Shown: positions 21,101 through 59,300 of the stretch, in pieces
How positions within the stretch are numbered: the stretch's first letter is position 1
Layout: every line of letters begins with the position of its first letter
Origin: Cyanophora paradoxa CCMP329
Lineage: Eukaryota > Plantae > Glaucophyta
DNA: 64,000 nucleotides
Direction of reading: 5' to 3'
Assembly (NCBI GenBank): GCA_004431415.1
Contig: QPMI01000121.1
Coordinates: forward strand, 1 to 64,000
The notes under the pieces: model-generated
Databases searched by the model: none
What the model saw: only the letters and a program-made list of their open reading frames with translations
What the model was told of the DNA's origin: nothing
Position numbers and translations under genes: made by a program

Positions 21101-24100
21101 CCCGCAGGCCGCGCACGCAACGCGCCCGTCGGCCCCCTCGCCCGCTTCCTCTGTCTTCACATCTGTGTGGCAGAGTTGGCGCGGCGGGGGCGCGGGAGGG
21201 AGAGAACGGGTCAGACCGGTTTCGCTGGCGGAGCCGCCACTCTCATCTGAGCCCTCCTCCGCGTCTGAGCCCTCCTCCGCGTCTGAGCCCTCCTCCGCGT
21301 CTGAGCCCTCCTCCACGTCTGTGGGGCGCTCAGCGAGAAGCACGCGCGAGCAACAGCGGCCGCACCAGCGTCATCAGCAGCGGCGCCACCTGCTGAGCAT
21401 GTTAGGAGCCTGAACGTCGGCGAGACGAGCCAAGGGGCCGCACCTGCACAGCCCTCGCTCCTTCGACAGTGCACCGAAAGCCCCAGCCTGCTTCCGAACC
21501 CGCGGTCGCACACACCGCAGCGGTGCAGGCCATCTGTGGCCGAGCTTGGCTCCTCATCCCCGCCCGCAGACGAGCCCGCATCCTCAGCCGCCTCCGGAAC
21601 CTCGCGGTTTGCTGCAAGGCGGGCCGCCGGCTCGTGAGTGTTCGCAAGGCAGGGCGGAAGAGGCGCCGCGCGGCCGGCACCCGTGCAGTAATTTTGGTGC
21701 CGCTTGAGCCCGCCCTGAGTCGCGAAGCTCCGGCCGCACTCGCACGGAAACTCCTCCTCCCCCTCGCTCTCCGCTGGGCTGCTGGACACTTCAGCCGCCT
21801 CCTTGTCGTCGGTCCCCGCCGCGGCCTCTTCCTTGGCCAACGCCGCGGTGCTTCCCGCAGATACGCGATCGCGAGCTGCTGACCACGTCAGGAGTCGGAA
21901 CGACGGCGAGGCGAGGGCAATATGATCCGTATCGATATCAACGCGCACCCGAGTCACCTGCAGTCTTGGCCTGCGCCGGGGGGGGCCGCTTTGCCGGGAA
22001 TCCCTGCAGCACACGGTCGGAATGGGCGAGCTGGAATATTTAAGAGCAAGGGCGGACTCGATGCTTTTCTGGGCAGTGGGCCTTGTGACCCTGAAGCGAT
22101 ATCTCTCTCTCAAACGCCTTTCCGCACAATTCGCAAGACCAGTCTCCGGCACCGACACCGGCCTCAGATCCGGCCCCCGCCGCTTCTTTCCGCCGCTTTG
22201 TAGCATCTGCGACCGCGCTGGCACCTCCATTTGAGCCATCCTCGGCCTCGTCACGATCGTGCTCACGAGCCCTCCCCTTTCCTTCTGCTCCCACTGAGCG
22301 CATCAGGGGCTCGAAAGATTGCAGAACATTCTCTGCGGGCCAAAGGGGCCGCACCTGCACAGCCCTCGCTCCTTCGACAGTGCACCGAAAGCCCAAGCCG
22401 ATTTCCGAACCCGCGCCCGCACACCCCGCAGCAGTGCGGGCCGCCTGCGCTTGTGGCTGTGCTTGCGGTGGCGGCGTTGGCCTCCGAGCCTGCATCTACG
22501 CCTGTGGGAAGTTGAGCGTGGGCCAGAAGAATACGAAAGTGGGGGGGAGGGGGGGGAGGGGGGTGGGAGAGGAGGGGCAGACCCTTTCCGCCAGCGGCGT
22601 CGCCGCTTGCCTCGAGGTGCGCTTCGCCAGGGCCGGCAGCGAGGTCGACGGGAGGCCCCTCCGAGGCGCAGCGGCGCTCGTGCTCGGCAGCGCCGTCGGC
22701 GTCGAGCATCTCTCCGCAGCGCTCGCACCAGATATCTGCCCCGCCCCGAGGGTCCGCCTCCGCATCCAGGTCTGCCGGGCGCGTCGGCGCGGGGCGCGCA
22801 GGGACGAACATGGGCCGCACCGGCTTTGGCTTCCCTGCTCGTGGCATCCGGGGCGGAGTCCGCTGAAGAGGGCTCGACTGCGAGCCAGAAGAGGCGACGA
22901 CGGTGAGCGAGCCGTGCGGGCAGGCGGGCACGTGTGCGCGCGCACCGCCACAGTGGACGCGGTGTACCCGCAGGACTTGAAGCTTGAACGAGCGCCCGCA
23001 GTGCTCGCAGGGCGCCCGGTCGCACGGCGATGCCTCCGCCTCGGCTCCAGCCTCCGCCTCGGCGCCTGCGCCCCGCGCCCCGCCGTGCTCCTCCTTCGTC
23101 CCTGCCGCAGGGGTCGCCGCGAGGCGTGCCGCGCTGCAGGAGGCAGACGCACCGCCGCACGTAGCGCTCATTCGCCTGTGACGTGCGAGGCCGACCGCCG
23201 ACGTGAAGCTGCGCCTGCACTCGCCGCAGCGGAGCCGCTTTCGGCCCTTCTTCCCCTTGCCCTCCTCGCCCTGCCCCGCCTCTCCGGCTTCCTCCTCCTC
23301 CTCCTCCCTCTCCGCGTCTCCGGTGCTGTCGCTCGCGGCAACTGCGCCGCCCCAGTCAGAAATTCGCGCCGGTACCGATACACTGCACGCACCCGCTTTC
23401 GCCATCGAGCAGTATCTCTTGTGGCGGAGGAGCCAGCCGTCGGTCTTGAAGGTCTTCCCGCAGACGCACTTGCGCGCTGCGCCGTCCACCGCCGCCCCCC
23501 CGCCCCCCGCGGGCCTGGCCCCCTCCTCGAAGCGGAAGTCTGAGGCTGGACCGGCCTCAGGACGCCCCGGCGCGAGGCCCAGATCGGGGGGGGGAGGAGG
23601 GGGGGGGAAGGGGGAGGGGGGGGAGAAGGGGGAGGGGGGGGAAGGGGGAGAGGGGGAGGGGCGAAAGCAAGCGCACCGAGGCAGAGGGAAGATCCTTGGT
23701 GGACTCTGAGCCCCATCTGGGTGTCGAAGCGCCGGCCGCAGCCGCAGAGGAAGCTACCCCGGCCCCCGGGCCCCGGATCGCCGTCCCCGCCACCGGCCCC
23801 GGACCCGCCGCCCCTCCGGAGAAACGGCAGGGCCGGCGGAACCTTGGACTTGCCCGCCGCCGCTCCACTTGAGGCCTGCGAGGCCGGCTGCGCGCCCTCG
23901 GCCTGCTTGCTGCCCGCCGATCCGAAGCCAAAGGGTACCACGACGCTGGCCAGGACTCCGGGGCACGTCCTCATGTGCCGAGCCAGGTTTTTGGCGTGGT
24001 AGAGCCGCCCGCAGCCGCCGCAGGGTTCCGCCTCCTTTGCCGCTGCAAGGGGAAAGGGGGGTAAGGGGGTAAGGGGGGGTACGGGGTAAAGGAGGTGTTT

Positions 24101-25481: not shown

Positions 25482-25692
25482 CGTGCCCGGCGGCGGCGAG
25501 CGCTCAAGAGGCGAGTCACCCGCTGGGCCGCTGGCACCGCTGGTCCGCTGGATCCTGGGCCGGGGTACAGATCTCGCAGGCATGCTGGCACAGCTCGGCC
25601 GAGCTTTATGCGGCCGGTGACCGCGCTCGCTTGCATTGCTCAGCAGCTTCTGGTCCAATCGCAGCGTGGATTTTAGAACGCAGGCCGCTGTC
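25482..25692. promoter_or_regulatory. Putative bidirectional promoter between divergent genes
   Basis: Only 211 bp separate the inferred ATGs at 25481(-) and 25693(+); CCAAT at ~25654. Confidence 0.45.
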
Positions 25693-28600: not shown

Positions 28601-31275
28601 AACGCGGAGCCCTCTAATTTCTCTCAGATGATCATCTCGGGGTGGGTGCACGGGGCCCTGCAGGTGGCCCACCACGCGACCTCCGGGACCCGCGGGGCCG
28701 CGTGGGTCTTCCAGTGGACCGGCAGCGCCGAGGGCCGCGTCAACCTCGCCGGTCCGTCTCGGGCCGCCCCCGCCTCCGATCCGCTCTCCAAGGCTTCGTT
28801 CCTCTGTGCCCGGCCCTCATTCCTCTTATCCCAGGGCTCATCGCTGCGATCGTCTTCCTTGCCGGCTGGCTCCTCGCCCGCGGTTCGATCCATTTGTCGA
28901 GCGGGCGCTCGTCTCGTCTGGTCTGAGGCTCGTGACACAGGCTTTGTCCGGAGGAGGTGGTACGAGGTCCGCTCTCTTCTGCAGATCGAGCTCGCGCCGG
29001 TCGCCTCGCGAATCGAGCGCTCGAGCGCGCAGCTGTTTCTGTGGGGCCACCGGGCCTCGGTCGCCGGCTTCGCGTTCGCCATCATCCACGAGTGCGCATG
29101 CGCGAAAGAGTAAAAGCTCTAGAGACGCCCCTCCCCCCCCTCCCCCTCCCCCTCCCCCTCTTCCCCCCCTCCCCATCCCCCCGCCGCCCCCCCCCTCCCC
29201 CCCTCTCATCTCTTGCGCCCTCCGCGCCGCGCGCAGCCGCTCGAGCGTGCCCTTCGTGGTGCCCGGCGTGCTCCTCCTCGCCCTCGACCACGCCCTCCGC
29301 TTCGCCCTCGCCCGCTCCCGCCAGGTCCCCGCCCTCCCTTCTATAAACAGTTCCAAGGGTGTTCCTTACGCGACGGCGCAGGCCAAGCTCCTCTCGATGC
29401 GCGTCGAGCCCGGCGGCATCCTGCGGTGCGCGCGCGCGCCCCCGGGCCCTCTACTAGGCTAGATCTTTCTTTCCCCTGGAGGCGCAGCGCCGGCGCCGCC
29501 GTCAGACCCCGCCCTCGGCCCGCCTCTTCGGGGGCGTCTCTCACCCCGCCCGCCAGGCTGGAGATCTCGCGGCCCGGGGCGCCCATCACCGGGCCCTCCC
29601 AGTACGTCTTCCTCCAGGCGCGTAGCCCGTACCCCCTCAAACAAACAACTCGGCTCGGCTCAGCTCGGCTTGGCTCGCCGCGCACGCGCAGGTCCCTGCG
29701 GTGCGGGCGCTGGAGTGGCACCCCTTCTCCGCCTCCTCGGGGCCCTCCCCCGACGGCTCCTTCACCCTCCACATCCGGCCCCAGGCAGGCCGCCCCCGGC
29801 GCCGCCGCAGAAGTCTGTACCCCCGTCCCCGGGGACGCTGAGCCGCCGGCGGGCGCAGGGCCCGGGCTCCTTCACGGCGGACCTCGCCGCCCTCGCCGAG
29901 TCGGTCCGCCGGCGTCCTTACCCCTCTAGACCTTCCGCTCCCCCTCCCCTCCCCGCCTCACCTGAGCCGCCTCGCCCCCCCCGCGATCGCAGTGCAAGGG
30001 CCGGCCGGCCGGCGACCTGCCGCTCGTCCGCGTCGAGGGCCCTTAGTGCGCTCCGACCCGACCTGCGCTCGCGCTCCTCAGCCCCGCGCGGCAGCGGGCG
30101 CCCCGCGGTGGCCCTCGAGCGCTACGAGAACTTCGTCGCCGTGACGGGCGGCGTCGGTGCGAGCCGCCCGCGCCCGAGCGCCGCCCGGATCCGCCCCGAC
30201 CACGAGTTCGCTCGCCCCCCGCGCAGGCCTCGGCCCGGCGCTCTCGGCGGCCCACTGGCTCGCAGAGCACAGCCAGGCGGTGCGCCCGCGCCCGCGCCCG
30301 CGCCCGCGACCCGACCCGTCCAACTGATCGCAACGCGCGCGCGCGCGCACCCCGGCGGCGCGCCCCGGCAGGTCCGGAGCGTGCGGCTGCTCTTCACGAC
30401 GAGGGACGAGGCCTCGGCGCTCGCCTTCGCCGAGCCCCTGCGCGCCCTCCAAGCCGCCCTCGCGAGGCGCAAGGTGCCAAGAAAGATATCTCGGATTCTT
30501 CTAGTCGCAAGGAAGGGAAGGCCCGACTAAATATAACACGCGCTGAATGCCCCGTTAAATCACTAGTACCCCCACCCAACTCCGAGGACGCCCTCGCAAG
30601 GCGCAAGGTACTACTACGTTCTCCCCGAGCCTCGAACTAGCTATATGCAGTACCCCCCCCGAGCTCCGTGTACGTACCCCCCCGCGAGCTCGCGCCTGCC
30701 CAGATCCCGCTGGAGGTCTCCATCCACGTCACCCGCGGCAAGGACGGCGCCGCCGGCGGCGGCGGCGGCGGGGGCGGCGCGGCGGCGGTGCGCAGGCTCG
30801 CGGTCACCCACAGGCTCCAGTGATCGTGACCTCTAGCTTGCTGCAGGCGCCCTCGGCGCCGGCCGCCGTCCTCGATGTGGGTCTGGAGGTGCACTCGGCC
30901 CAAAGTCTCAAGCGCGGCCGCCCCGACCTCTCCGGTCCGAACGCGCCCGACCCGACCCCGGCACGGCCGTCGGGCCACGCGCGCCGCTGAATGCGCTGAC
31001 GGCTCGAGCTCGCGGCGGGCGAAGGATTCCTCAAGTCCGCGGCAGCGGGGCCCGAGCGCGAGTCGCCTTTCCGCCCCGCCGCCCTCCTGATCTGCGGGCC
31101 CGCCAGCCTCTCCAAGGTGCTCCACTTTGGAATCAATGTCTCGGCCCCCCGCTCTGCGCTCGGCACAGCCTCTGCCCCCTGCTATCTTGATTCGTTCTCC
31201 ACGCAGGAGGCGCGGCGGGCGGCGGACGCGGCCGGGGGCTTCCATGTCCACGAGGAGCCCTTCTCGTTCCTCTGA
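25693..31275 (+). CDS. Secreted Temptin-like domain + S/T/G/P linker + SEA-like segment + ferric reductase/NADPH oxidase (FRE/FRO) module; multi-exon
   Basis: Signal peptide MRRGGAGADGLTLAVLVLVLGGAYS. Temptin-like RYQSLIPNG..WAAGHVSSGGGGSRCPFG|RDFEAAGLRWTKALCEKDS|DGDGFHNGWELG|DPCCVW..DISHPG. FRE TM region LLPATRN..LGIPSDRAMK|YH..WVHG..RRRWYE|LFLWGH..IIH. FAD-binding QYVFLQ|VPAVRALEWHPFS. NADPH-binding VTGGVG..LICGPASL..HVHEEPFSFL*; stop 31273-31275. Confidence 0.88.
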
Positions 31276-31437: not shown

Positions 31438-31789
31438 GCCGGGGGGCGGATCCGGGGGGGAGGGAGGTGGGGAAGAAGGAGGGGGAGGGGAGGCGGGGGG
31501 GGGGGGGTGCTGGCGCCGGGCCCCGGGGCCCCCCACCAGTCATGATCAGGGCCAGGGCCAGTCCCCGGCCGGGGCGGGGCTACCGTAGTACTAGTAAGCC
31601 ACCCGGGGGCCTTGGCTCGGGCCGGGGACCGGGGGCCACGCCGGGGGAGGGGGAGGAGCGGGGGGCCAGGGGGGGGGGGGGGGAGGGGCTGGGGGGGAGG
31701 GGGCCGCGGCTCAGCGGCTGGGGGGGAGGGGGGGGTGGAGGCCAAGGGGGGGGGGGGGGGAAAGGGGGAGGGGGGAAAGGGGGGGGGGG
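31438..31789. repeat. G-run low-complexity tract (G-quadruplex-prone) downstream of the FRE gene
   Basis: Many G4-G16 runs separated by short linkers. Confidence 0.7.
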
Positions 31790-32613
31790 CTTAAACATAT
31801 GAATTCGCACACACCGAGACAAATGGCTAGCGATATAACTGAGGTGTCCATCTGTGTCAAGTCGAGAGATGAACCTGCAGGACTAATTATAAGCCTTTCG
31901 GACATCGGACCGGGCGGAGCTCGGATGTGGAAATAACTGGAAGGGCTACCCCGGGGCTAGGTCTAGCGCTGCAGTACAGGGGAGATCCTACGCAAGGAGG
32001 GAATCACTACCCAAGGACGAGAGGGCGAGCAAGGTCTGAAAAACAAGCGGACGGCTAGACGACTGCAGCTGTGACTATACCTAGCCAGCTATGGCCTCCG
32101 GGAAGGCGCTCTGTAACCTAAGCCAATCTAGATCTGTATATACGTACACGCTAAAATACGGCCCGCCGAGTCGTCGGCCGCGGCACGGTGGGTTCGGGGG
32201 TGGGGGCGCGCTCGTGCGGGAGCGGGCCTGGTAGAGCCCCCGGGCTCATAGGAACGGGCAGTTGTCGGTCGGGAGAATCGGAAAAGGAATAGGAATAGGA
32301 AAGGGGGATCGGAGGGGTATGGGGCGGGAGGGCGTGAGGCGGTGGAGGAGGACGGGGGAGGACCGGGTCGGGCGGTCCGACGGTCGCGGTCGGGGAGGAG
32401 GGATCGAGGTTCCAGTGGCGCGTCCCGCCGGGCTTCCAGCGTCCTGACGACCGCTCCCCCCCCCCCCCCCCCCCCCGCCGCGGCCAATGATGCATGATGG
32501 GCCGGAAAGGGGGGTGGGGGGGGGCGGCCCTGGTCCGGCAGACCCCGCGGGGCCCAGCTGCAGCCTGCAGCCTTGATGACTTGTCTCGGCTTTGTCAGTT
32601 GTGCGAATTCAGG

Positions 32614-33132: not shown

Positions 33133-33457
33133 ATAGCTATAGAATTATATAAAAGTCTGCGCCAGGGTACGTAGGCCTGCCTGCGGCTGGCCTGCTAGCT
33201 TTGTATCGGCTACTACCGGCTAGCTATATAGCCTTCAAGGCTTCTAGCTCTATGGCCTTCAAGATCAATCAATTTATGTACCCGGTAACTTCCAAAGGTT
33301 CGAAAAAATTCGGTGAGCCGAACCTGTTGGCCAGCAATTGCTATCATAGTATAGAATTATAAGGCTGCGCCAGGGTAGGCCTGCCTGCCGCAGTGCGGCT
33401 GGCCTGCCAGCTTTCTAGCGGCTAGCGATATAGCCTGCTAGCTCTATAGCCTTCAAG
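33133..33457. repeat. Diverged direct duplication (~110-130 bp x2)
   Basis: 33133-33263 vs 33346-33457 share TATAGAATTATA..CTGCGCCAGGGTA..GGCCTGCCTGC..GGCTGGCCTGC.AGCTTT..CTAGCTCTAT.GCCTTCAAG. Confidence 0.8.
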
Positions 33458-33883
33458 CCGGCGCCACCCCAGTGACCCGAGGCTGCACTGCCCCAAGGGC
33501 AGGAATGTTTATGAATCGTGAGATTCATGAGTGGAGTCAGTTACTTATGATTCAAGTTATGAATCAAGTTATTATTATCATGAGTACTAGTGAATCAGTG
33601 GTGATCACAGCTCGCGAAAAAAAGTCGGTCCCCACAACTCGGTTTGTATGACAGGGGGGGGGGGCAAGTCGACTTGGAAAATCCCTACGCCAGTCAATTA
33701 GACCTTTTTTAATAAACATTCTCATAGAGCTTATTTCTTTCTATCAGTGCATGCATATATGGTTTTAACGCCGGCGGAAGGGAGAATTTCGGTCGCCGGG
33801 TATAGACGTCAGCACACAGCGCGCCTCCTGCACAGCGCTATCAGCGACCCAGATCAGCGACCCAACGCTCAGCGTCGCTCGCA

Positions 33884-35268
33884 ATGGCCCTCGACGACGT
33901 GCGCACGAGCTTTCCAGCGGCGTTCCTCTCGGACTACGTCCCGCCTCTGCATCCCGTTTTCGCGGCGCTGGCGGCAGGCGCAGCGCAGAATGCAGCCAAC
34001 GCCGTGCAGCAGTCGCCTTACTACACGCCGCCGCGGAGTATGCGCCTCAGTCGAGGCGCCCTGCGCAGCCTGCAGAATCCAGACCCGCGCCTTGCAGGTT
34101 CGCGACGTGGCTGCGCTCTCGCCGCCCTCTGCCTTCACTTCTCGCCACTTCCTCACATTTCGGACGCGCAGAAGGGCATCCCGAAGCGGAGGTCGCGCGC
34201 TCGGTGTTCCGCAACAAGATCCTCCCGAAGCGTATCAACCCCTACGGCAGGGCCGTAGTCACCTCCCCGTTTGTGCAGCGGATGTTCACTTCGTTCTGCT
34301 CGGAATCCTACCACGCGGCGGTCTTCCTCGGCCAGGCGGCACGGGCGGTCGCCCGCAGGAGGGACTTCAAGACGTGCAGCTGGACCCTCGTCGGCTCCTT
34401 CGATCAGCTGGCGCGTTGTCTTTTTTGGCATCCTTCTTGCGGAATTCCATCCCGCTGAGGCCACGCTCGTGCAGGTTGTGGAGAGCTGGCTCGAGGACAC
34501 GGCTCGCGCCATCGGCATTGAGCCGGAGACAGGGGGCGGCCGCACCCGCATCGTCATGGAGACGATGAAGGATTTCATCCAAATATCGGGTGAGCAGTGC
34601 CGCTGCTCGAACCCCAGAGCCTCGGAGAGCCGACGCGCACCCCGCAGGCTCCGTGCAGACGGCCGTTCCGCAGCAGAACACGATGATCGTGCCTCTTGGG
34701 CTCATTTCGGAGGCCTACGATGCTAGCATGGAGGCGGGCCGCCTCTTCTTCCCGATCGGGGGCGCCATCTCCGTCAACCTGCTTGACGGTGGGGCTGTTC
34801 TTCTTCGTTCCTGGCTCTTCTTCTTAGCTCTTCTTAACTCTTCGCGCTTGCGCGTGCGCAGTTTCCTTCGGGTCGCAGGCGTACATTCTGGAGAAGGCGA
34901 CGCTGCAGTCGCCTGCCGCGATCCCGGCCCAGTGGCACTATGCCGAGTTCACGAAGCTCTTCATTCCGGACCCGGCCTGCGAGCCGCAGGCGCTTCTGAG
35001 CCACAGCGACGAGCTCTTCCTCACCGGCGACGAGCGCTCGCCGGCTCGCACGGGCGCCCCGCCCGGCACGATTGACCTCTTCGTCGGGCGCGGCCACATC
35101 GGCTGGGTGCGCTCCGCGTGCGTCCAGTGCGTTCCACAGTTCGTACTTTTCGACATCGCGCAGGATCTGGTCGCCGAGTTTGCGCCTCTGCGCCGGCGGC
35201 TCTCCGGTGCCAGGACTGCTGTGCTGCTGTACTGGCGCCGCGGAGGAACGGCTGCGATGAGGCGATAG
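33884..35268 (+). CDS. Transposon-borne spliced gene (~370 aa) with a putative C-terminal BAH-like domain
   Basis: Exons approx. 33884-34097, 34172-34410, 34475-34589, 34649-34788 and 34861-35268 join in frame. C-terminus FFPIGGAISV..AYILEK..YAEFTKLFIP..HSDELFLTGDE..IDLFVGRGHI parallels the BAH consensus (by-eye alignment only). Confidence 0.6.
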
Positions 35269-36115
35269 CTAAGCGCTAGCCACGCGGCGAGCACGCTGGC
35301 TGGGCTGGGAATAGAAGTACGTAGGGGTATTGATACGCGAGCGCTGGCCCGTCCGCAGAAGGACCGGGGACGAAGCCGAGCCCTGCGGAGGTGTGCTATC
35401 GCCCGCAGAATCGCGCCTGGCGCCCGCAGACGTGGTCTCGCTCTTGTTCGCGGCCGCGGTACTCAACTCCTCAAGTGTCCCTGCGGCGGGCGCGCGTGGC
35501 TTCGGCTAGCGCTCGCGGACTCGGGACTGCAGAAACCGAAAGGACGTACTCAGAGGAGCTCGCGGGCTCGCCTTGGGGGTCCCGGCAGACCGGGGCGGTG
35601 TCGCCGCCGGACCTGCACCGGCCCGCACTTCGGTGCGCGCGGCGCGGGGCTGCGCGGGGCCGCGGAACGAACGCACTGGCGGTGTTCTCGATGCGATTAC
35701 AGTTCTCTTTGTTCCTCGGAGAAGCCGAGGCTGCGGCTGCGCGCGGCCGCGGGTCGTCGAAGTGAGCAGCGCTGGAGACGCGGCGGGGGCGAGCTAGCCG
35801 CGCGTACGCGACTCCCCGCACCTTCTGGACGCTCCGCGGGGCGCTTGGGCCTCGCGCCCGGGCCCCGCGCACTCGCGTTCGTCGCTTCTCCGCTGGGGGG
35901 CCCTGCACGAACTTGTCAGTCTCTCAGGGGCGCTGCCAGATTTCGAGCTGCCATCAAGCACAGAGATAGCTCGCTTGAATGTCTAAACTTTGGCGGAAGC
36001 GCTTTGGAAATCGGCGGAGTGGTTTTCGCGCACGGTTCTTGTGGAAGTTGCTGAGCTTGCTCAACTTCTTAGATTTGGCCGCGGCGGTGCCCGAAAGCAC
36101 CCGTTCCTGCTCCAT
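35269..36115 (-). CDS. Putative second transposon-borne spliced gene, low-complexity/basic, function unknown
   Basis: ATG at 36115 (MEQERVLSGTAAAKSKKLSKLSNFHKN); several GTGCG..CAG intron-like segments on the minus strand; last exon TLEELSTAAANKSE..RVASA* ends at 35269. Exon phases not fully resolved. Confidence 0.4.
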
Positions 36116-36364
36116 ATGCGACCTGGAGGCTAGCTGCGACGCTCTCTGCTGCGCGCGGGAGCTGCCGCGCGTGCTGGTCGCGCGCTTCGCCGAGTCGCGT
36201 ACGTCTACCCCCGGTGTTTTAACTTTTGCTAGGGGAGAATTATTCGAGTCCCAAGTCGAGTCCCAGCCAAGTCGAATTGCGGGGACCGACTTTTTTTCGC
36301 GAGCTGTGATACGTATACTGTAGAACTAGTTTATTTAGTACAGGAAAATAATTAGTATGCCCCC

Positions 36365-36411
36365 AATCAGTGGTGATACGTATACTGTAGAACTAGTTTA
36401 TTTAGTACAGG
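36365..36411. repeat. Intact copy of a 47-bp tandem duplication = empty target site of the 33606-36308 element
   Basis: AATCAGTGGTGAT-ACGTATACTGTAGAACTAGTTTATTTAGTACAGG equals 33593-33605 joined to 36311-36344. Confidence 0.92.
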
Positions 36412-36675
36412 TTATTTTGCTTTTTTGTCTTTATGCCCCCTGGCCCCTGGGCAGCCCCCGCAGTGCTGGTGTCTAGACTCTAGAGACTGTGGCCGGTAAT
36501 TCACCCCAAAAATAATAATTAGTAGTTCGCCAAAACTGTCACTTAATTATAAACTCACTTAAGCAGGGGCAAAATCTTTATAGTAGGTCGGGCTTCACAG
36601 GGGTTTTAATTGTATGGCGGAGAAGGGACTACCCCTAAGAAATCTCGGCTTTAGCAGGCGTGTGTCCGACGGTCA

Positions 36676-36917
36676 CACAGCTCGTTTTTTTTCCTAATCG
36701 ACTCGACATGCCCGTTGTATGGGCAAGGGTAGCCGGCGATCGCGATAACTTTTCACCCGTCGCAGAACGGCTAGTCTCCTCGCAACAGCTTGTAGCCGGC
36801 AAGCTAGCGGGTAGATTGCACTAGCTAAAGCCGGGGAATTCCAAATACCCGCGGGGAATTTTAAGGAAAACCGGATGCTCGCCGTGTTGGGTCGACCGGT
36901 AAAAAAAACGAGCTGTG
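36676..36917. mobile_element. 242-bp MITE of the CACAGCTCG terminus group, 2-bp TSD (CA)
   Basis: CA|CACAGCTCGTTTTTTTT ... AAAAAAAACGAGCTGTG|CA; 17-bp perfect TIR. Confidence 0.9.
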
Positions 36918-37972
36918 CACTCATTGAAGAAAAGAAGAATTTTGATTGGACAAACCATGGTACGTATACTTGCGCATGCAGGATACTAGTAGCTCGGCGC
37001 CGACTGGTACTAGCCGTGAGGTCGTCCAACGGTCGCCGCCGACTCGCCGGCCCCAAGTCCCCGCGGGGCCGGTACCCCGGTTCATTCAGAGTTGGGGGTA
37101 CGCCACAGTGCGCGCTCCGAGCCTCCTCCGGATCCAGGCTGCTGCAGAAGCGAAGAAGCGACTAGTCGCCGACTACTGCACTTCGAGAAGCGACTGCTGC
37201 ACTGCCGGCAGGCCGGCAGGCACACAGACTGTACATGTGACACAGTGCCACACTGCCACACACAGCGCTCAGCGGCTACAACTTAGCCTACAAGTAGTAT
37301 TCGACTTGGCAAGCTCGCCTGCAAGCTCGCCTTCCGAACGAAAGCCGAAATTCGTAGGTAGGCTGTAGCTACCAGCCTACCAGCCGTGCGGGATAACGCC
37401 GGGATTCTCAGGAAGCTTCGCTCATCGTACACACGGTGCGTACATCGGCGCTGCATGGCCAGCTCGCAGCGCCGCTGAGCTCAACTCGCAGCTGGCAGCA
37501 ACGAGTGGGGCACACACACTAGTTACATATATGCGGGCCAGCCTGCTGAAGTATCAGGGCTGAGGCGCCGTCGGCAGCATCGTGCGCGAGTTGCAGCACT
37601 TCGACATCGACCGCGCGCGCGTGCGCGGTCCGGTCGACAGCTGCAGCCTGGCCATGGCCTGGATGCTCGCGCTTTTCTGTACCGGCTAAACCGCTCAGCT
37701 GCAGCGCGCAAGCATCCGCACGTGTGTATGAGCTGCAGCTGCAGCGGGCGCCGCGGCGCGGCTGGGCGGTCGCGGGTTCATCGGGCTCGACGTGTGCCTC
37801 GGCGATAGGCGATGACCGTGCACATGCAAGGGAGGTCGAGCCCCGGAGGCGGCGCGGGAGGAGGCCCTAGCGGAGGCATAGAAGATAGGACCGCCGGGCA
37901 GCTCATGTGGGCGGACTCGCCTGGCGTCGCCGCGCGTGCACGTGCGCGGCGCGCAAGCTCGAGCGCGCACAC

Positions 37973-38350
37973 ATGTGCGCGCGGGAGGCCGTTCACGTGC
38001 GTGCCACGGTGCCCCGCCCGCAGCCGTTCGCTGTTCGCCGACCGTGCCCCACCAGCTCCTTGCGCCCGACGCGCCCCGCGGCCGCTGCCCTCCTCCTCGT
38101 CGTCCTCCTGGGCCTCCTGCGGGCCGCCTATGGCGCGGGACCCCGCTCGCAGGGTGCGCTGCTGGCTTTTTTCACTCCCCTTCCGCCCCCCCCCCCCCCC
38201 CCCTTCCCGCCCCTTCCCCGCCCCCCCCCCGCCCCTCCCTCCCGATTCCCCTCGCCTCCCTCGTCCCCCTCCACCCCCCCCCCCCCCCCTCCACCCACCC
38301 CCATCCCCTCAGCTCCTTCGCCTCATTTGCCGAGCTAGACCTGTGGTCCC

Positions 38351-53300: not shown

Positions 53301-56300
53301 TGCTCGAGCTGTGCGTCTCGTCTGTAATGCCTGCACTTCGCGCGCGCGTCTTAGCCCGTCGCAGGTCCGAATGGATGGTACCCCACGCTCGATCTCACCA
53401 ATTGTGCACCTTGGTAAGCCGTCGCGCGACGAGCCATTGCGGCCTCCCAGTCCTCCAACAATCCTGCAGCGTGGCTGGAACGCATCAGCCCGAGGAGCTT
53501 CGGCCGTGCGAGGCGTGCCCCCCGGGGACGTGGGCGGGGCCACAACACTTCGGCCCCTGCATCACATGCCCCCCGGTAGCTGCTGATGGCTCGCTCGCGG
53601 AATTCAACCCGGCTCACTGGTTGGCAGGGGCAAGTCACGACGGACAAGCAGGACGGGTGCACGTGGTGCAGGCCTGGATTCGGGGTCCCGCCGAACGAGA
53701 CCGTCTGTCTCTCTTGCGATGAAGGTGACGATAAGCGCCGCCAAAAGCGTTGCAGGCGAGGGAAGGCTCCGTTCGCGACGTCGCCTTCCGGCAGATTACG
53801 CGTCCCCCGACGGGAAGGGCTGCGAGAAGTGCCGCCCCGGCTACGTCTCGCTATCAGATAGGAAGGTGCTTGATTTCTATTTATATCGCTCTTGTTTTAT
53901 CTTTTCAACATTTACGCAGGCCTGCTTGCCGTGTCGGGGTGGTACGGCGGAGTACGGGCGCTCCGGGGAGTGTCTTCCGTGCGCTCAGAACGAGGTCGCC
54001 CCTTTCGAAGGATCCACGAACTGCACGGCCTGCCCGGACGGCAAGTACGCTTCGGCAGACCAGCGGTTGTGCTTCGACTGCCCAGCTGGTTCGCTCCATT
54101 ATTTTCAAGAACTCGCTTTTAGATTGGAAAATCCGCTATGCAGCCTGACCGGTTCGTCAGGTACATATCGACACGGAACGATGGCGAAGTGCGAGGCGGT
54201 GCCTGGCCAGGCTGTCGCGCTCGTCGGCTCGTCCAACTTCACAAAATGCCAAGCCGGTTTTGTGCCCGACGGCACCAAAGCAACGTGCATGCCGTGCCGA
54301 GGCGGTGAGCGGGCTCGGACGCCCGGTTTCCGCATCCGCTGCGCCTAGCTGTGGCTAACGCCGCGCAGGCTCCTACCAAAGCGGCGAAGACTGCGTCCCG
54401 TGCCCGCTGAACACGGTCGCTTCATCGCCTGGGACGGTCAATTGCACGCCCTGTGCGCCCGGCTACGTTGCTGCGGCCGACCAGCAGTCCTGCGAGCCTT
54501 GCCCGGTGGGGACGTGGCGGGACGAAAGCATGACGGCATGCGCCCCTGTCCCGAAGCGCGCGGCTGCCGTGCAGGGGTCGTCGGCGTACATCGAATGCCC
54601 CGACGGGCACGTCCCGGACGGGACCAAGGCGACTTGCGTCCCGTGCCCTGCAGGCAAGCGAATGCTGGTCTTCTTCGCTCTCTTTCATATACAAGCGTGC
54701 TCATGCGTTCTGCAGGCCTGTACCAACTCGGGGACAGCTGCCTCCAGTGTCCGCTGAACTCCATCGTGAGCAGCTCGGGCGCAGCGGAATGCACGCTATG
54801 CGCACCGGGCTACGCGGCCTCGGCCGATCAGCAGTCCTGCGAGCCGTGCCCATTCGGCACCTACCGCTCGGCAAACCTCTCGCAGTGCACCCCCGTTCCA
54901 GCCCGCGCCGCCGCCAAGCAAGGCTCCGCGGTGTACGAAGTGTGCGGCAACGGAACAGTCCCGTCAGCGATCCGGTCGGACTGTGTGGAATGCCGCGCGG
55001 GGAGCTACCAGCTGGAGGACCAGTGCCTGCCCTGCCCGCCGAACACGATCACGTCCGACCCCGGCAAGGACCAGTGCGAGACGTGCCCCGAGGGCTACGA
55101 GGCCGCGGCGGATAGGCAGACCTGCACACGTGCGCTGCGTCTGCCTGTGCGAGCGATGGTGGCTGGCTGACGAGACGCGTGCGCAGCGTGCTTGGCGGGC
55201 ACCTACAGGCACGCCCCGCTGGTGTCGTGCCAGCGCGTGCCTGTTGGGGCGGCGGCCGTAGCGGCGTCCAGGAACTACACCGTCTGCGCGAGAGGCACGG
55301 TCCCCAGCGACGATCTTGCGACATGTCTTCCATGTCCGCGGGGCACGTACGAGAAGGACTGGCGGTGTCGCGACTGCGTTGGCGCGTGGTTTCGGCTTTC
55401 TAGCTGATTCCGGTCTTCGCTGACACTCCTTATACGAATTTAGGCAATTCGATTGCACCCAATATGACGATGACAAGCTGCATCGACTGGTTTGCATGCT
55501 TGTTCGGTTTGCGTACTGATTCTCACGCACTAAACGTACGCAGCGACCCGGGGATGATTGCTGATGAGACGCGCCAACATTGTAGAGCATGGTACGGTCT
55601 CCTTTGTTTATACTGGTTTTGCACTCATGCACTGTTTGACCGCAGCGAGCCGGGATACTTCCAGCCCGACCGCGCTAGCGGATGCGAGCGCTGCCCTGCC
55701 GCGTTGTTTTCTCAAAGCATGCAATTCGGACAATGTAAAGAATGCCCAGCGGTGCGCAGACGCGCCGAAAAGCGCTGTCTCTCCGCCGTGGCTGACCATC
55801 GATGCAGGGCCAAGTTCCGAACGAGAAGCAAGACGGGTGCATGTGGTGCAGGTAAATACTCGGAGTCTCTTACAAAGCCTTACGCCAATTTACTGAGCCG
55901 CTTTTGCTCTCAGGCCTGGTTATGGCAAGCCGGCCAACGCAAGCATTTGTCTCATTTGCGAGAACGGTTTGTTGTGCTTTGCCCGTCGATTTCGGTATCT
56001 TTTCTCTGATGCGCCGCATATTGTCATTTGAATAATCTTAGACCATGCGTCGCCTGACGGCACTGGCTGCAAAAAGTGCGAGTTGGGCTTCGTGTCGCAA
56101 CCGGATAGGCTGGTGCGAGCCCTTTTTATGAAACCTCTCGAATTTTCGCTGAGACCACGTTCGGCTGACATCCGAGCAGGCGTGTCTTCCATGCCGAGCT
56201 GGAACAGCGGAGTCGAGCAGGTCGGGCGAGTGTGTCCCGTGCGGGCAAAACAAAATCGCTGCATTCGAGGGTTCTTCCACTTGCACGGCTTGCATGGATG

Positions 56301-59300
56301 GCGAATACGCGTCTGCAGATCAGCGTCTGTGCTTCAAATGCCCCGCAGGTGCGAATGTCGCACCCAGCTTTGGATTTCGTTAGCCCCGTCCTTCTTTTCA
56401 CCAACGATGAATGCCCTTCGAAACAGGCACTTATCGCCACGGCTCGATGCCACTCTGCCTTCCGGTGCCTGCTCGGGCAGTGGCTCTTCTGGGCTCTTCG
56501 AACTACACACTCTGCGAACCCGGATTCGTTCCAGACGGCACAAAAGCCTCCTGCCTTGCTTGCCCTGCTGGTGCGCGTGTTGAGTCGTTGTCGCATGATC
56601 GTTGACATTGATCCAGAAGCATCGCGATTTCCAGACCTAAGATGTTTTTTGCACAGGAATGCGGCAGATTGGCGATGGCTGCTTCCTGTGCCCGCTGAAT
56701 ACGGTCGCTTCATCGCCTGGGACTGTCAATTGCACGCCCTGCGCACCCGGCTACATTGCTGCGGCCGACCAGCAGTCCTGCGAGCCGTGCCCGGTGGGGA
56801 CGTGGCGGAACGCAAGCATGACCGTCTGCATTCCCGTCCCAAAGCGCGCCGCCGCCGTGCAGGCGTCGTCGACGTACATCGAATGTCCAGACGGGCACGT
56901 CCCGGACGGGACCAAGGCGACGTGCGTTCCGTGCCCTGCAGGCAAGCAAATGCTGGTCTTTTTCGCTCTCTTTCATATACAGGCACGCTCATGCGCTCTG
57001 CAGGCCTGTACCAACTCGGGGACAGCTGCCTCCAGTGCCCGCTGAACTCCATCGTGAGCAGCTCGGGTGCAGCGGAATGCACGCTATGCGCCCCGGGCTA
57101 CGCGGCCTCGGCCGACCAGCAGTCCTGCGAGCCGTGCCCATTCGGCACCTACCGCTCGGCAAACCTCTCGCAGTGCACCCCCGTTCCAGCCCGCGCCGCC
57201 GCCAAGCAAGGCTCCGCGGTGTACGAAGTGTGTGGCAACGGAACAGTTCCGTCAGCGATCCGGTCGGACTGTGTGGAATGCCGTGCGGGGAGCTACCAGC
57301 TGGAGGACCAGTGCCTGCCCTGCCCGCCGAATACGATCACGTCCGACCCCGGCAAGGATGAGTGCGAGACGTGCCCCGAGGGCTTCGAGGCCGCGGCCGA
57401 CAGGCAGACCTGCACACGTGCGCTGCGTCTGCCTGTGCGAGTGATGGTGGCTGGCTGACGAGACACGTGCGCAGCGTGCTTGGCGGGCACCTACAGGCAC
57501 GCCCCGCTGGTGTCGTGCCAGCGCGTGCCTGTGGGGGCGGCGGCCGTAGCCGCGTCCAGGAACTACACCGTCTGCGCGAGGGGCACGGTCCCGAGCGACG
57601 ACCTTGCGACATGCCTCCCGTGCCCGCGGGGCACGTACGAGAGGGACTGGCGGTGCCGCGACTGCGTTGGAAACACATACGCCCCTCTCCATGGAATGAC
57701 CGCGTGCCAAGATTGGTATGCTGGGCTTCTGTTCGCTTTCGTCTGCAATGCTGAATGCATGCACACAGCGAGCCTGGTTTTGTTGCGGACGAAACGCGCG
57801 AAGTTTGCTCGCCGTGTCCGAGTGGCTCTGCAAGGCCTGCGAGCGCCAGCTCCTGCCACGTGTGCCCCGCCATGTATTTCGCCAACGCACCCGGCCGCGC
57901 CCAATGCGATCTTTGGTCCGCGCCCACGATCCGTTGTCGCGGCGCCCGCCTTTTGCGCCTGAGCCCGTCCTGCAGCCCCCCAGGGACAGAGTCTGCCGAC
58001 AATCGCGTGACCTGCTTGCCGTGTCCCTTGGGTTATGCGGAGGTGAACGGCACGCGGACGTGCCGGTTCTGCGACGAGGGGACAGTCGCGGAGGACCAGG
58101 GCGCGGTCGAGTGCAGATCTTGCGCCCCTGGTGAAATCTCCAACGGCGATCGGTACGCAAAAATCGATGAAGTGTCGAACTTCAGTCTCTGCGTGAAGTC
58201 GGCGTGCTCGCTCGCAGCACGCGCTGCACTCCGTGCCAAGCGGGCACTTTCAAGCCTCGGAACATGAACGTCTGTCTGCCGTGCCGGATCGGGACCTGGG
58301 CGCCCGCGGGATCACAGACGTGCCGGCCATGTGAGCCTGGATCGTACGCGTCCGAAGACTCCAGCGAGTGCATCGCGTGCACTCCAGGCACGTTCATGCC
58401 GGAGGGCTCCCAGGCCTGCCTCAGGGTGCGCGCTCATTCGTATCAGTCTCTCGCCTTCTCGAACAGCGAACCTTTCGCGGTCCAGTGTCCCGAGAACTCC
58501 ATCGCGCCTGATCCTGGGACGGCCTTTGCGTGCACGCCTTGCGATGCCGGGTACACAGCGTCAGCCAACCGCCGCGTTTGCGAGCCCTGCGCTCTGGTGC
58601 TTATCCTATCTTTTGCTCTGGATGCAATTTCCCTCTGTGGATTGATTTACCGCCACCTTTTGCAGGGCTTCTACAGGCCGCTGGACAGCAACAGCACAGG
58701 GTGCATTCCATGTGGGCCAGGAACTGTCTCGCGGTCCGCAGGCACCGGCGAGTGTGAGCAGTGGTGCGTCTGTAATGCAGCCCATGCGCAGTCTACGCCC
58801 TGTACACTATGTACCCCTGTTGACGCTGGGAGACAGTCCACCAGGAAAGGTGCCGCGTGAAGACCGCGCAGACTGCAGGGGTACGGAACCTTGGCTCGCG
58901 CCAGCAGCCTCATCATCGCGTCACGCGCTTATTGCTTATTGCAATCAATGTCTTTTCTGCTGCAGACTGCGCCGCTGGAACGTACCCCGGCGGCGGCGTC
59001 TGCTTGCCGTGTCCGCCTCTAACTACCTCACGTTCCGGAGGTTCGCGGCCCCCTCAAGCATCCCTTCAATTTTTGATCGACCACGCAGATCCGACTTGCA
59101 CCCGCTGCCCTGCCGGGTCGATCTCCGACGATGCCCGCAAAGCGTGCATACCGTGCCCGTCGTCGATGTACCTGCCGCCGAGCAGCGAAGTCTGCCTTCC
59201 GTGCCCCATGAATGCGATTTCGCAAGCCGGGTCCACGGGCTGCACTTGGTGGTACGTTGCATACTTGCTGTGTTTCTCTCCGTTCGGGACTCGCTAACGA

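Follow-up and report, generated by a model that had tools for sequence, protein, structure and literature searches.

A young non-autonomous DNA transposon with CACAG ends in Cyanophora paradoxa, and the predicted orphan gene that it carries

Results

A 2.7-kb element in C. paradoxa

We analysed a stretch of 64,000 nucleotides from the glaucophyte Cyanophora paradoxa CCMP329 (GenBank assembly GCA_004431415.1, contig QPMI01000121.1, positions 1 to 64,000 of the forward strand; hereafter the window). A reading of the window and a repeat search placed in it a transposon of 2.7 kb (33606-36308), which is bounded by inverted repeats and contains a predicted gene of five exons, called here the cargo gene. 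Its terminal inverted repeats (TIRs), its target-site duplication (TSD), its lack of a transposase and the ends that it has in common with a neighbouring miniature inverted-repeat transposable element (MITE) show that it is a non-autonomous cut-and-paste DNA transposon. We have fairly good confidence in an explanation in which this is a young non-autonomous transposon of C. paradoxa, whose transposase would be supplied from elsewhere and whose cargo is most likely an orphan open reading frame (ORF) native to the transposon family.

Terminal inverted repeats, target-site duplication and empty site

The element begins with CACAGCTCG and finishes with CGAGCTGTG. Both TIR arms read CACAGCTCGCGAAAAAAAGTCGGTCCCC; 28 nucleotides are perfectly repeated, as the original prediction had proposed and the repeat search bore out, and 29 of the first 30 are identical. 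The left TIR (33606..33646, forward strand) starts with CACAGCTCGCG, a run of seven adenines and GTCGGTCCCC, and the right TIR (36268..36308, reverse strand) ends in CGCGAGCTGTG. When the flanking palindromic AT is counted in, the arms are 43 nucleotides long and 91% complementary.

Comparison with an empty site showed that the dinucleotide AT is present on the left (33604..33605) and on the right (36309..36310) of the element. The flanking sequence is part of a local 67-bp duplication (33593-33605 and 36306-36411), of which the next uninterrupted unit (36365..36411) is a paralogous empty site, 67 bp away. The left flank (40 nt) and the right flank, put together after removal of one AT, matched positions 36365-36411 without gaps at 47/47, and joins from which zero, one, three or four nucleotides were removed gave lower match scores. 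Since the best join is the one with two nucleotides removed, the TSD is 2 bp long, as predicted, and the insertion was precise. Perfect TIRs together with an identical empty site indicate that the insertion is young.

A neighbouring element with the same ends

The MITE (36676..36917), which was found by the repeat search and by a scan for pairs of ends, is 242 bp long and begins 368 bp downstream of the 2.7-kb element. Its ends consist of CACAGCTCG followed by eight thymines, and its TSD is the dinucleotide CA (36674-36675 and 36918-36919). It carries TCGAC cores at the places where the larger element has its subterminal octamers, and its interior is unrelated to that of the larger element. 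The presence of CA on both sides of the MITE resolves the ambiguity of boundary that comes from the palindromic AT of the 2.7-kb element. It also excludes a TA-specific mechanism of the Tc1/mariner type; these transposons need a TA duplication, and the duplications found are AT and CA.

The window contains six copies of the 9-mer CACAGCTCG, where 0.73 would be expected, and four of the six sites are the termini of the 2.7-kb element and of the MITE. The sites at 25589-25597 (+) and 53305-53313 (-) stand alone: neither has a matching arm as its partner within 20 kb, and each is probably a chance match or an orphaned end. When all CACAG/CTGTG pairs lying at most 20 kb apart in the window were scanned, no other element with matching arms was found besides the MITE.

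Copies of TCGACTTG are repeated just inside both ends of the 2.7-kb element, and these subterminal repeats can also be written TCGACTTGG. The octamer CAAGTCGA/TCGACTTG is present seven times in the window and four of these seven copies are within about 80 bp of the two ends of the element. On the left, a palindromic subterminal motif, CAAGTCGACTTG (33665..33676), contains CAAGTCGA both ways round; on the right, two CAAGTCGA copies are located in the subterminal region (36252-36259 and 36268-36275). Beyond the TIRs, local alignments between the two ends of the element scored no higher than alignments of shuffles.

Transposase content

Pfam searches at E≤10 with every exon of the cargo gene gave no match. 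The exons are followed by a GC-rich internal tail of about 1 kb (35269..36251), which has no coding signal. Eight ORFs of this tail gave just two Pfam matches, both at chance level (E 0.1-0.35) and well under the curated cut-offs, and the tail showed no coding periodicity, no tRNA and no Rfam family at E≤0.1. It may represent a 3' untranslated region (UTR), a spacer or what is left of a region that was deleted. The absence of a transposase region, already noted in the original prediction, was thus confirmed, and it supports the proposal that the element moves in trans: an element that encodes no transposase must be mobilised in this way. We looked for other copies or an autonomous partner by scanning metagenome and viral contigs for the TIRs, by a protein-guided metagenome scan and by exact-product look-ups, and these were empty.

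Structure and coding signal of the cargo gene

Translation in three frames showed that the frame of the cargo gene is open over five exons, which begin with the ATG at 33884 and finish with the stop codon at 35266-35268. When only GT-AG introns are used, the exons are 33884-34097, 34172-34389, 34460-34589, 34648-34788 and 34862-35268. This chain of 1110 nucleotides is in frame and has no internal stops, and its four introns are 58-74 nt long. The intact ORF that had been proposed for positions 33884-35268 is therefore present, with four GT-AG introns, and a public model of the gene differs slightly from it. This complete, intron-bearing gene also agrees with the earlier view that the cargo is something other than a random captured fragment.

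The public model is a predicted protein of 352 residues from the EukProt proteome of C. paradoxa (tig00000475_g1231.t1; hereafter P0003), which matches the exons of the window residue for residue. Exon 1 (33884..34097, forward strand, as are the others) starts at the ATG and is the same in both versions. In P0003, exon 2 extends over 34172..34410 and exon 3 over 34475..34589, since its second intron has a GC donor at 34411 and its acceptor at 34474; a GT donor at 34390 and an acceptor at 34460 are the other options. Exon 4 (34648..34788) was found both by translation and in the public models. Exon 5, with the stop, covers 34862..35268, and P0003 also drops from it an in-frame intron of 57 nt (35107-35163).

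The GC content of the GT-AG chain was 0.65, 0.50 and 0.83 at the first, second and third codon positions, respectively. In exons 2-5 it was 0.84-0.89 at the third position (0.89 in exon 2) and 0.41-0.53 at the second. This codon periodicity is limited to positions 34172-35100; it is weak in exon 1 and fades past about 35100, so that the two ends of the protein are defined with less certainty. The adjoining tail, the overall GC content of which is similar, has no codon phase. The region 5' of the gene (33647..33883) contains a run of 11 guanines, an AT-rich stretch and a 13-nt tandem repeat (33840-33864), is devoid of codon periodicity and is presumed to hold the promoter and the 5' UTR.

A second copy of the cargo gene

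An HMMER match with exon 5 identified another predicted protein of C. paradoxa, of 312 residues (EukProt EP00741, tig00020904_g15191.t1; hereafter P0001), and P0003 was itself retrieved by a search with P0001 as the query. Exon 1 of the window is identical to both proteins at 71/71 residues. Comparison of P0001 with the exons of the window showed one substitution of V to I, a stretch of exon 2 in a switched frame and another stretch that is altered where exon 4 meets intron 4; the two models are about 99% identical over the exons that they have in common. P0001 is located on another contig, so the gene exists in at least one more copy, which has either suffered slight damage or been modelled in a different way. 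The gene models of C. paradoxa are BRAKER1/Augustus predictions made on a PacBio assembly (PMC6704402). Being predictions, they are no proof of expression, and indel errors of the assembly are possible.

Relatives of the cargo protein

Homology searches were made exon by exon, and the public proteins P0001 and P0003 served as full-length queries. BAH domains are found in proteins such as DNMT1, ORC1 and Sir3, and the original prediction had aligned the last ~120 residues of the cargo to this fold by eye, from which it proposed a chromatin-targeting or anti-silencing factor. No statistical tool reproduced this alignment. At E≤10, exon 4, exon 5 and P0001 matched neither the BAH family (PF01426) nor any other Pfam family, and a sequence search of PDB chains gave no match to the cargo.

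A phmmer search of 1.84 billion representatives with exon 5 retrieved its own cluster and one bacterial repeat protein (P0002; 2369 residues, E 2e-5), and no BAH protein. The match to P0002 aligned 46 residues of a repetitive protein and was read as spurious. When 5.8 billion clusters were searched by word index, the queries exon 5, P0001 and P0003 (residues 150-320, at E≤10) retrieved only P0001 and P0003. These libraries are very large, so a relative of less than about 30% identity would miss significance in them. Comparison of ESM Atlas features, including those of residues 195-330, gave scores of 0.76-0.78 for an unrelated peptidase family, which is within the range of shuffled sequences. 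The models obtained with AlphaFold2 without an alignment had a predicted local distance difference test (pLDDT) score of 35.7 for exon 5 and 31.0 for P0003, too poor to judge a fold; a fold search was therefore not justified, as matches to such models are meaningless.

No paralogues beyond P0001 and P0003 were found at E≤10 among the annotated proteins, either in the EukProt proteome of C. paradoxa or elsewhere. The predicted cargo protein is, as far as these proteins extend, a lineage-restricted orphan. The original prediction had itself named the lack of a BAH or chromatin-fold match as a result that would speak against it, and this is the outcome of the sequence searches, while the structure models, at a pLDDT of 31-36, were too poor to bear on it. 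A very divergent BAH-like fold might escape such searches, but it is unsupported, and so is the chromatin-reader or anti-silencing identity: PF01426 and all other Pfam families are absent at E≤10, PDB gave no sequence match and no credible relative from outside C. paradoxa was found among the 1.84 billion representatives or the 5.8 billion clusters.

Surroundings of the element

Both the element and the MITE have an AT-richer intergenic zone as their target, in which the GC content goes from about 70% to about 50% (32.8-37 kb). This zone also contains a repeat of about 210 bp with CTAGCTATATAGCCTTCAAG-type motifs, in two to three units at 33150-33470. Tracts resembling poly-G or poly-C are located at 31440-31790 (G-rich), 38177-38316 (C-rich), 23570-23690 and 29125-29235, and these long low-complexity tracts around the locus pair as inverted repeats, imperfect and at most 113 nt in length. 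Farther along the window, an ORF at 56232-57458 (+) encodes cysteine-rich repeats of the Ephrin_rec_like, cEGF and NCD3G types (Pfam E 1.5e-8) and probably belongs, as an exon, to a host gene of the secreted or receptor-like kind.

Discussion

Superfamily of the element

The lineages of the CACTA-Mirage-Chapaev-Transib (CMCT) group have 5'-CA..TG-3' termini and duplications of 2-5 bp (PMC12730594), and MITEs of the CMC superfamily have CAC..GTG ends and 2-bp duplications (PMC6004678). The ends of our element, CACAGCTCG...CGAGCTGTG, conform to the 5'-CA(C)...(G)TG-3' pattern of CMC/CMCT, and its AT, like the CA of the MITE, falls within the 2-5 bp of these lineages and the 2-3 bp of CMC proper. 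Transib termini follow a CACAATG-type consensus. A Transib element was rejected, since it needs a 5-bp TSD where ours is of 2 bp, and the termini agree only in CACA. The CMC/EnSpm assignment of the original prediction fits as regards ends and TSD, and it is by these ends and the length of the duplication only that the element and its transposase would belong to the CMC/CMCT clade. We know of no described family in which CACAGCTCG is followed by a homopolymer run.

Mobilisation of the element and origin of its gene

In the explanation that we favour, the transposase of a larger CACAG-ended element would recognise the terminal CACAGCTCG and the subterminal TCGACTTG repeats. This CMCT-type transposase would excise the element and reinsert it with a 2-bp stagger, the gene riding along, and a transposase of the same family would also mobilise the neighbouring MITE. 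The cargo could be an accessory or second gene of the family that stayed in place when the transposase was lost through an internal deletion, as happened in the deletion derivatives of En/Spm. A native ORF is favoured because no host paralogue or homologue was found, because the two copies are nearly identical and because the gene forms a complete transcription unit. We consider it less probable that the cargo is a host gene or a BAH chromatin reader. To the more precise proposal, in which an accessory ORF native to the family survives in a deletion derivative, we would give somewhat less than an even chance. If the cargo acts for the element, our best guess is that it would bind to the subterminal TCGACTTG repeats.

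Several points weigh against this explanation. No transposase is tied to these ends, and the superfamily is for that reason read from the ends and the length of the TSD. The step that makes the gene a native accessory is one that we purely infer. Just two gene models exist, the second of which differs by local indels or by its splicing model, and the differences of P0001 could be due to decay, to assembly errors or indels, or to annotation noise. Exon 1 and the last ~50 codons are weakly periodic. Finally, no transcript-derived cargo protein appeared in the three protein searches, and the expression of the gene is predicted only.

Other origins and roles of the cargo

The lack of a transposase, the complete transcription unit and the presence of only two annotated copies would also be explained by gene capture of the Pack type, in which a non-autonomous CACAG element acquired a gene of the host, promoter and introns included, that now travels in it as a passenger and takes no part in transposition; the 1-kb tail would then be non-coding filler. 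We consider this origin unlikely, as neither a host parent nor any other paralogue was found at E≤10 among annotated proteins, in C. paradoxa or outside it. Genes taken up by capture are usually incomplete, and the cargo is intact with all of its introns. The two models, at about 99% identity, fit a residence of both in young copies of the element.

The favoured native ORF could be carried one step further, to an orphan that is a trans-acting helper, binding the subterminal repeats or counteracting silencing, which was split from its transposase and spreads on a cassette of its own within a split two-element family. We regard this arrangement as improbable. C. paradoxa has CpG methylation of the DNMT1/DNMT3 type, enriched on young transposons (bioRxiv 2025.04.15.648976), so the host side of a silencing conflict exists; nothing ties the cargo to this conflict.

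It is a little more doubtful still that the element contains no functional gene and is an internally deleted, non-coding derivative in which a chain of ORFs was over-predicted in GC-rich DNA. Long ORFs do occur here in several frames, the protein is an orphan for which structure prediction gave no usable fold, periodicity is weak in exon 1 and past 35100, and the public models are BRAKER1/Augustus predictions (PMC6704402) for which no transcript-derived protein was found. Against this stand the GC contents of exons 2-5 (0.84-0.89 at the third codon position, 0.41-0.53 at the second), a periodicity that the adjacent tail does not have. Furthermore, four canonical introns of 58-74 nt restore one single stop-free frame, and the overlapping ORFs of the other frames do not have that phase.

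A divergent C-terminal BAH domain of about 120 residues, by which the cargo would target chromatin or counter silencing from a mobile cassette of its own, is very improbable: FPIGGAISV, ...KLFIPDP, SDELFLTGDE and IDLFVGRGHI do follow one another in the order of the BAH core strands, a likeness seen by eye that serves as a lead only, and methylated young transposons would offer such a factor a target (bioRxiv 2025.04.15.648976), but exon 4, exon 5 and P0001 gave no Pfam match at E≤10, no PDB chain matched the cargo at that threshold, no BAH protein was found among the 1.84 billion representatives, the ESM features did not rise above noise, the AlphaFold models showed no confident fold and no similarity of the cargo to any other protein of C. 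paradoxa was found.

Significance

Repeats make up 29.4% of the C. paradoxa genome, 11.5% of these are unknown, and no family-level analysis was included in its description (PMC6704402). The transposons of glaucophytes are almost undescribed, and the preserved empty site fixes the end motif and the 2-bp TSD of one family, which gives a handle for finding the autonomous partner. If the cargo were a family-specific helper, it would illustrate how an accessory gene can spread separately from its transposase. On the present evidence, the element is an ordinary non-autonomous one with a predicted orphan gene in a poorly annotated genome, and it is new at the level of the family.

Comparison with known systems

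The resemblance of the cargo to BAH proteins (PF01426) is one seen by eye, in a few spaced hydrophobic and acidic motifs of its last ~120 residues; unlike these proteins, it has no profile, sequence or feature-based match. Plant Pack-MULEs and gene-capturing CACTA elements usually contain pieces of host genes that can be identified. Our element is comparable to them in that it is bounded by TIRs, lacks a transposase and has coding sequence inside. It differs from them in that its gene is complete and has no host parent or homologue in the databases searched.

Deletion derivatives of the maize En/Spm transposon (dSpm, weak Spm) keep the capacity to encode TnpA and are without TnpD. The element of C. 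paradoxa shares with these derivatives its CAC ends, its subterminal repeats, the loss of a transposase and the dependence on a transposase acting in trans, and it may likewise keep the second, poorly conserved protein gene of its family. The cargo, however, is not similar to TnpA or to the Pfam family Transposase_24, and the TSD is of 2 bp instead of the 3 bp of En/Spm.

Finally, comparison with the CMC-NA MITEs and ENS1_Cis (PMC6004678) showed that our element is larger, at 2.7 kb, contains an intact spliced gene, and would be placed in its clade by its ends. Like them, it has 5'-CAC...GTG-3' termini and a 2-bp TSD, encodes no transposase and has a paralogous empty site.

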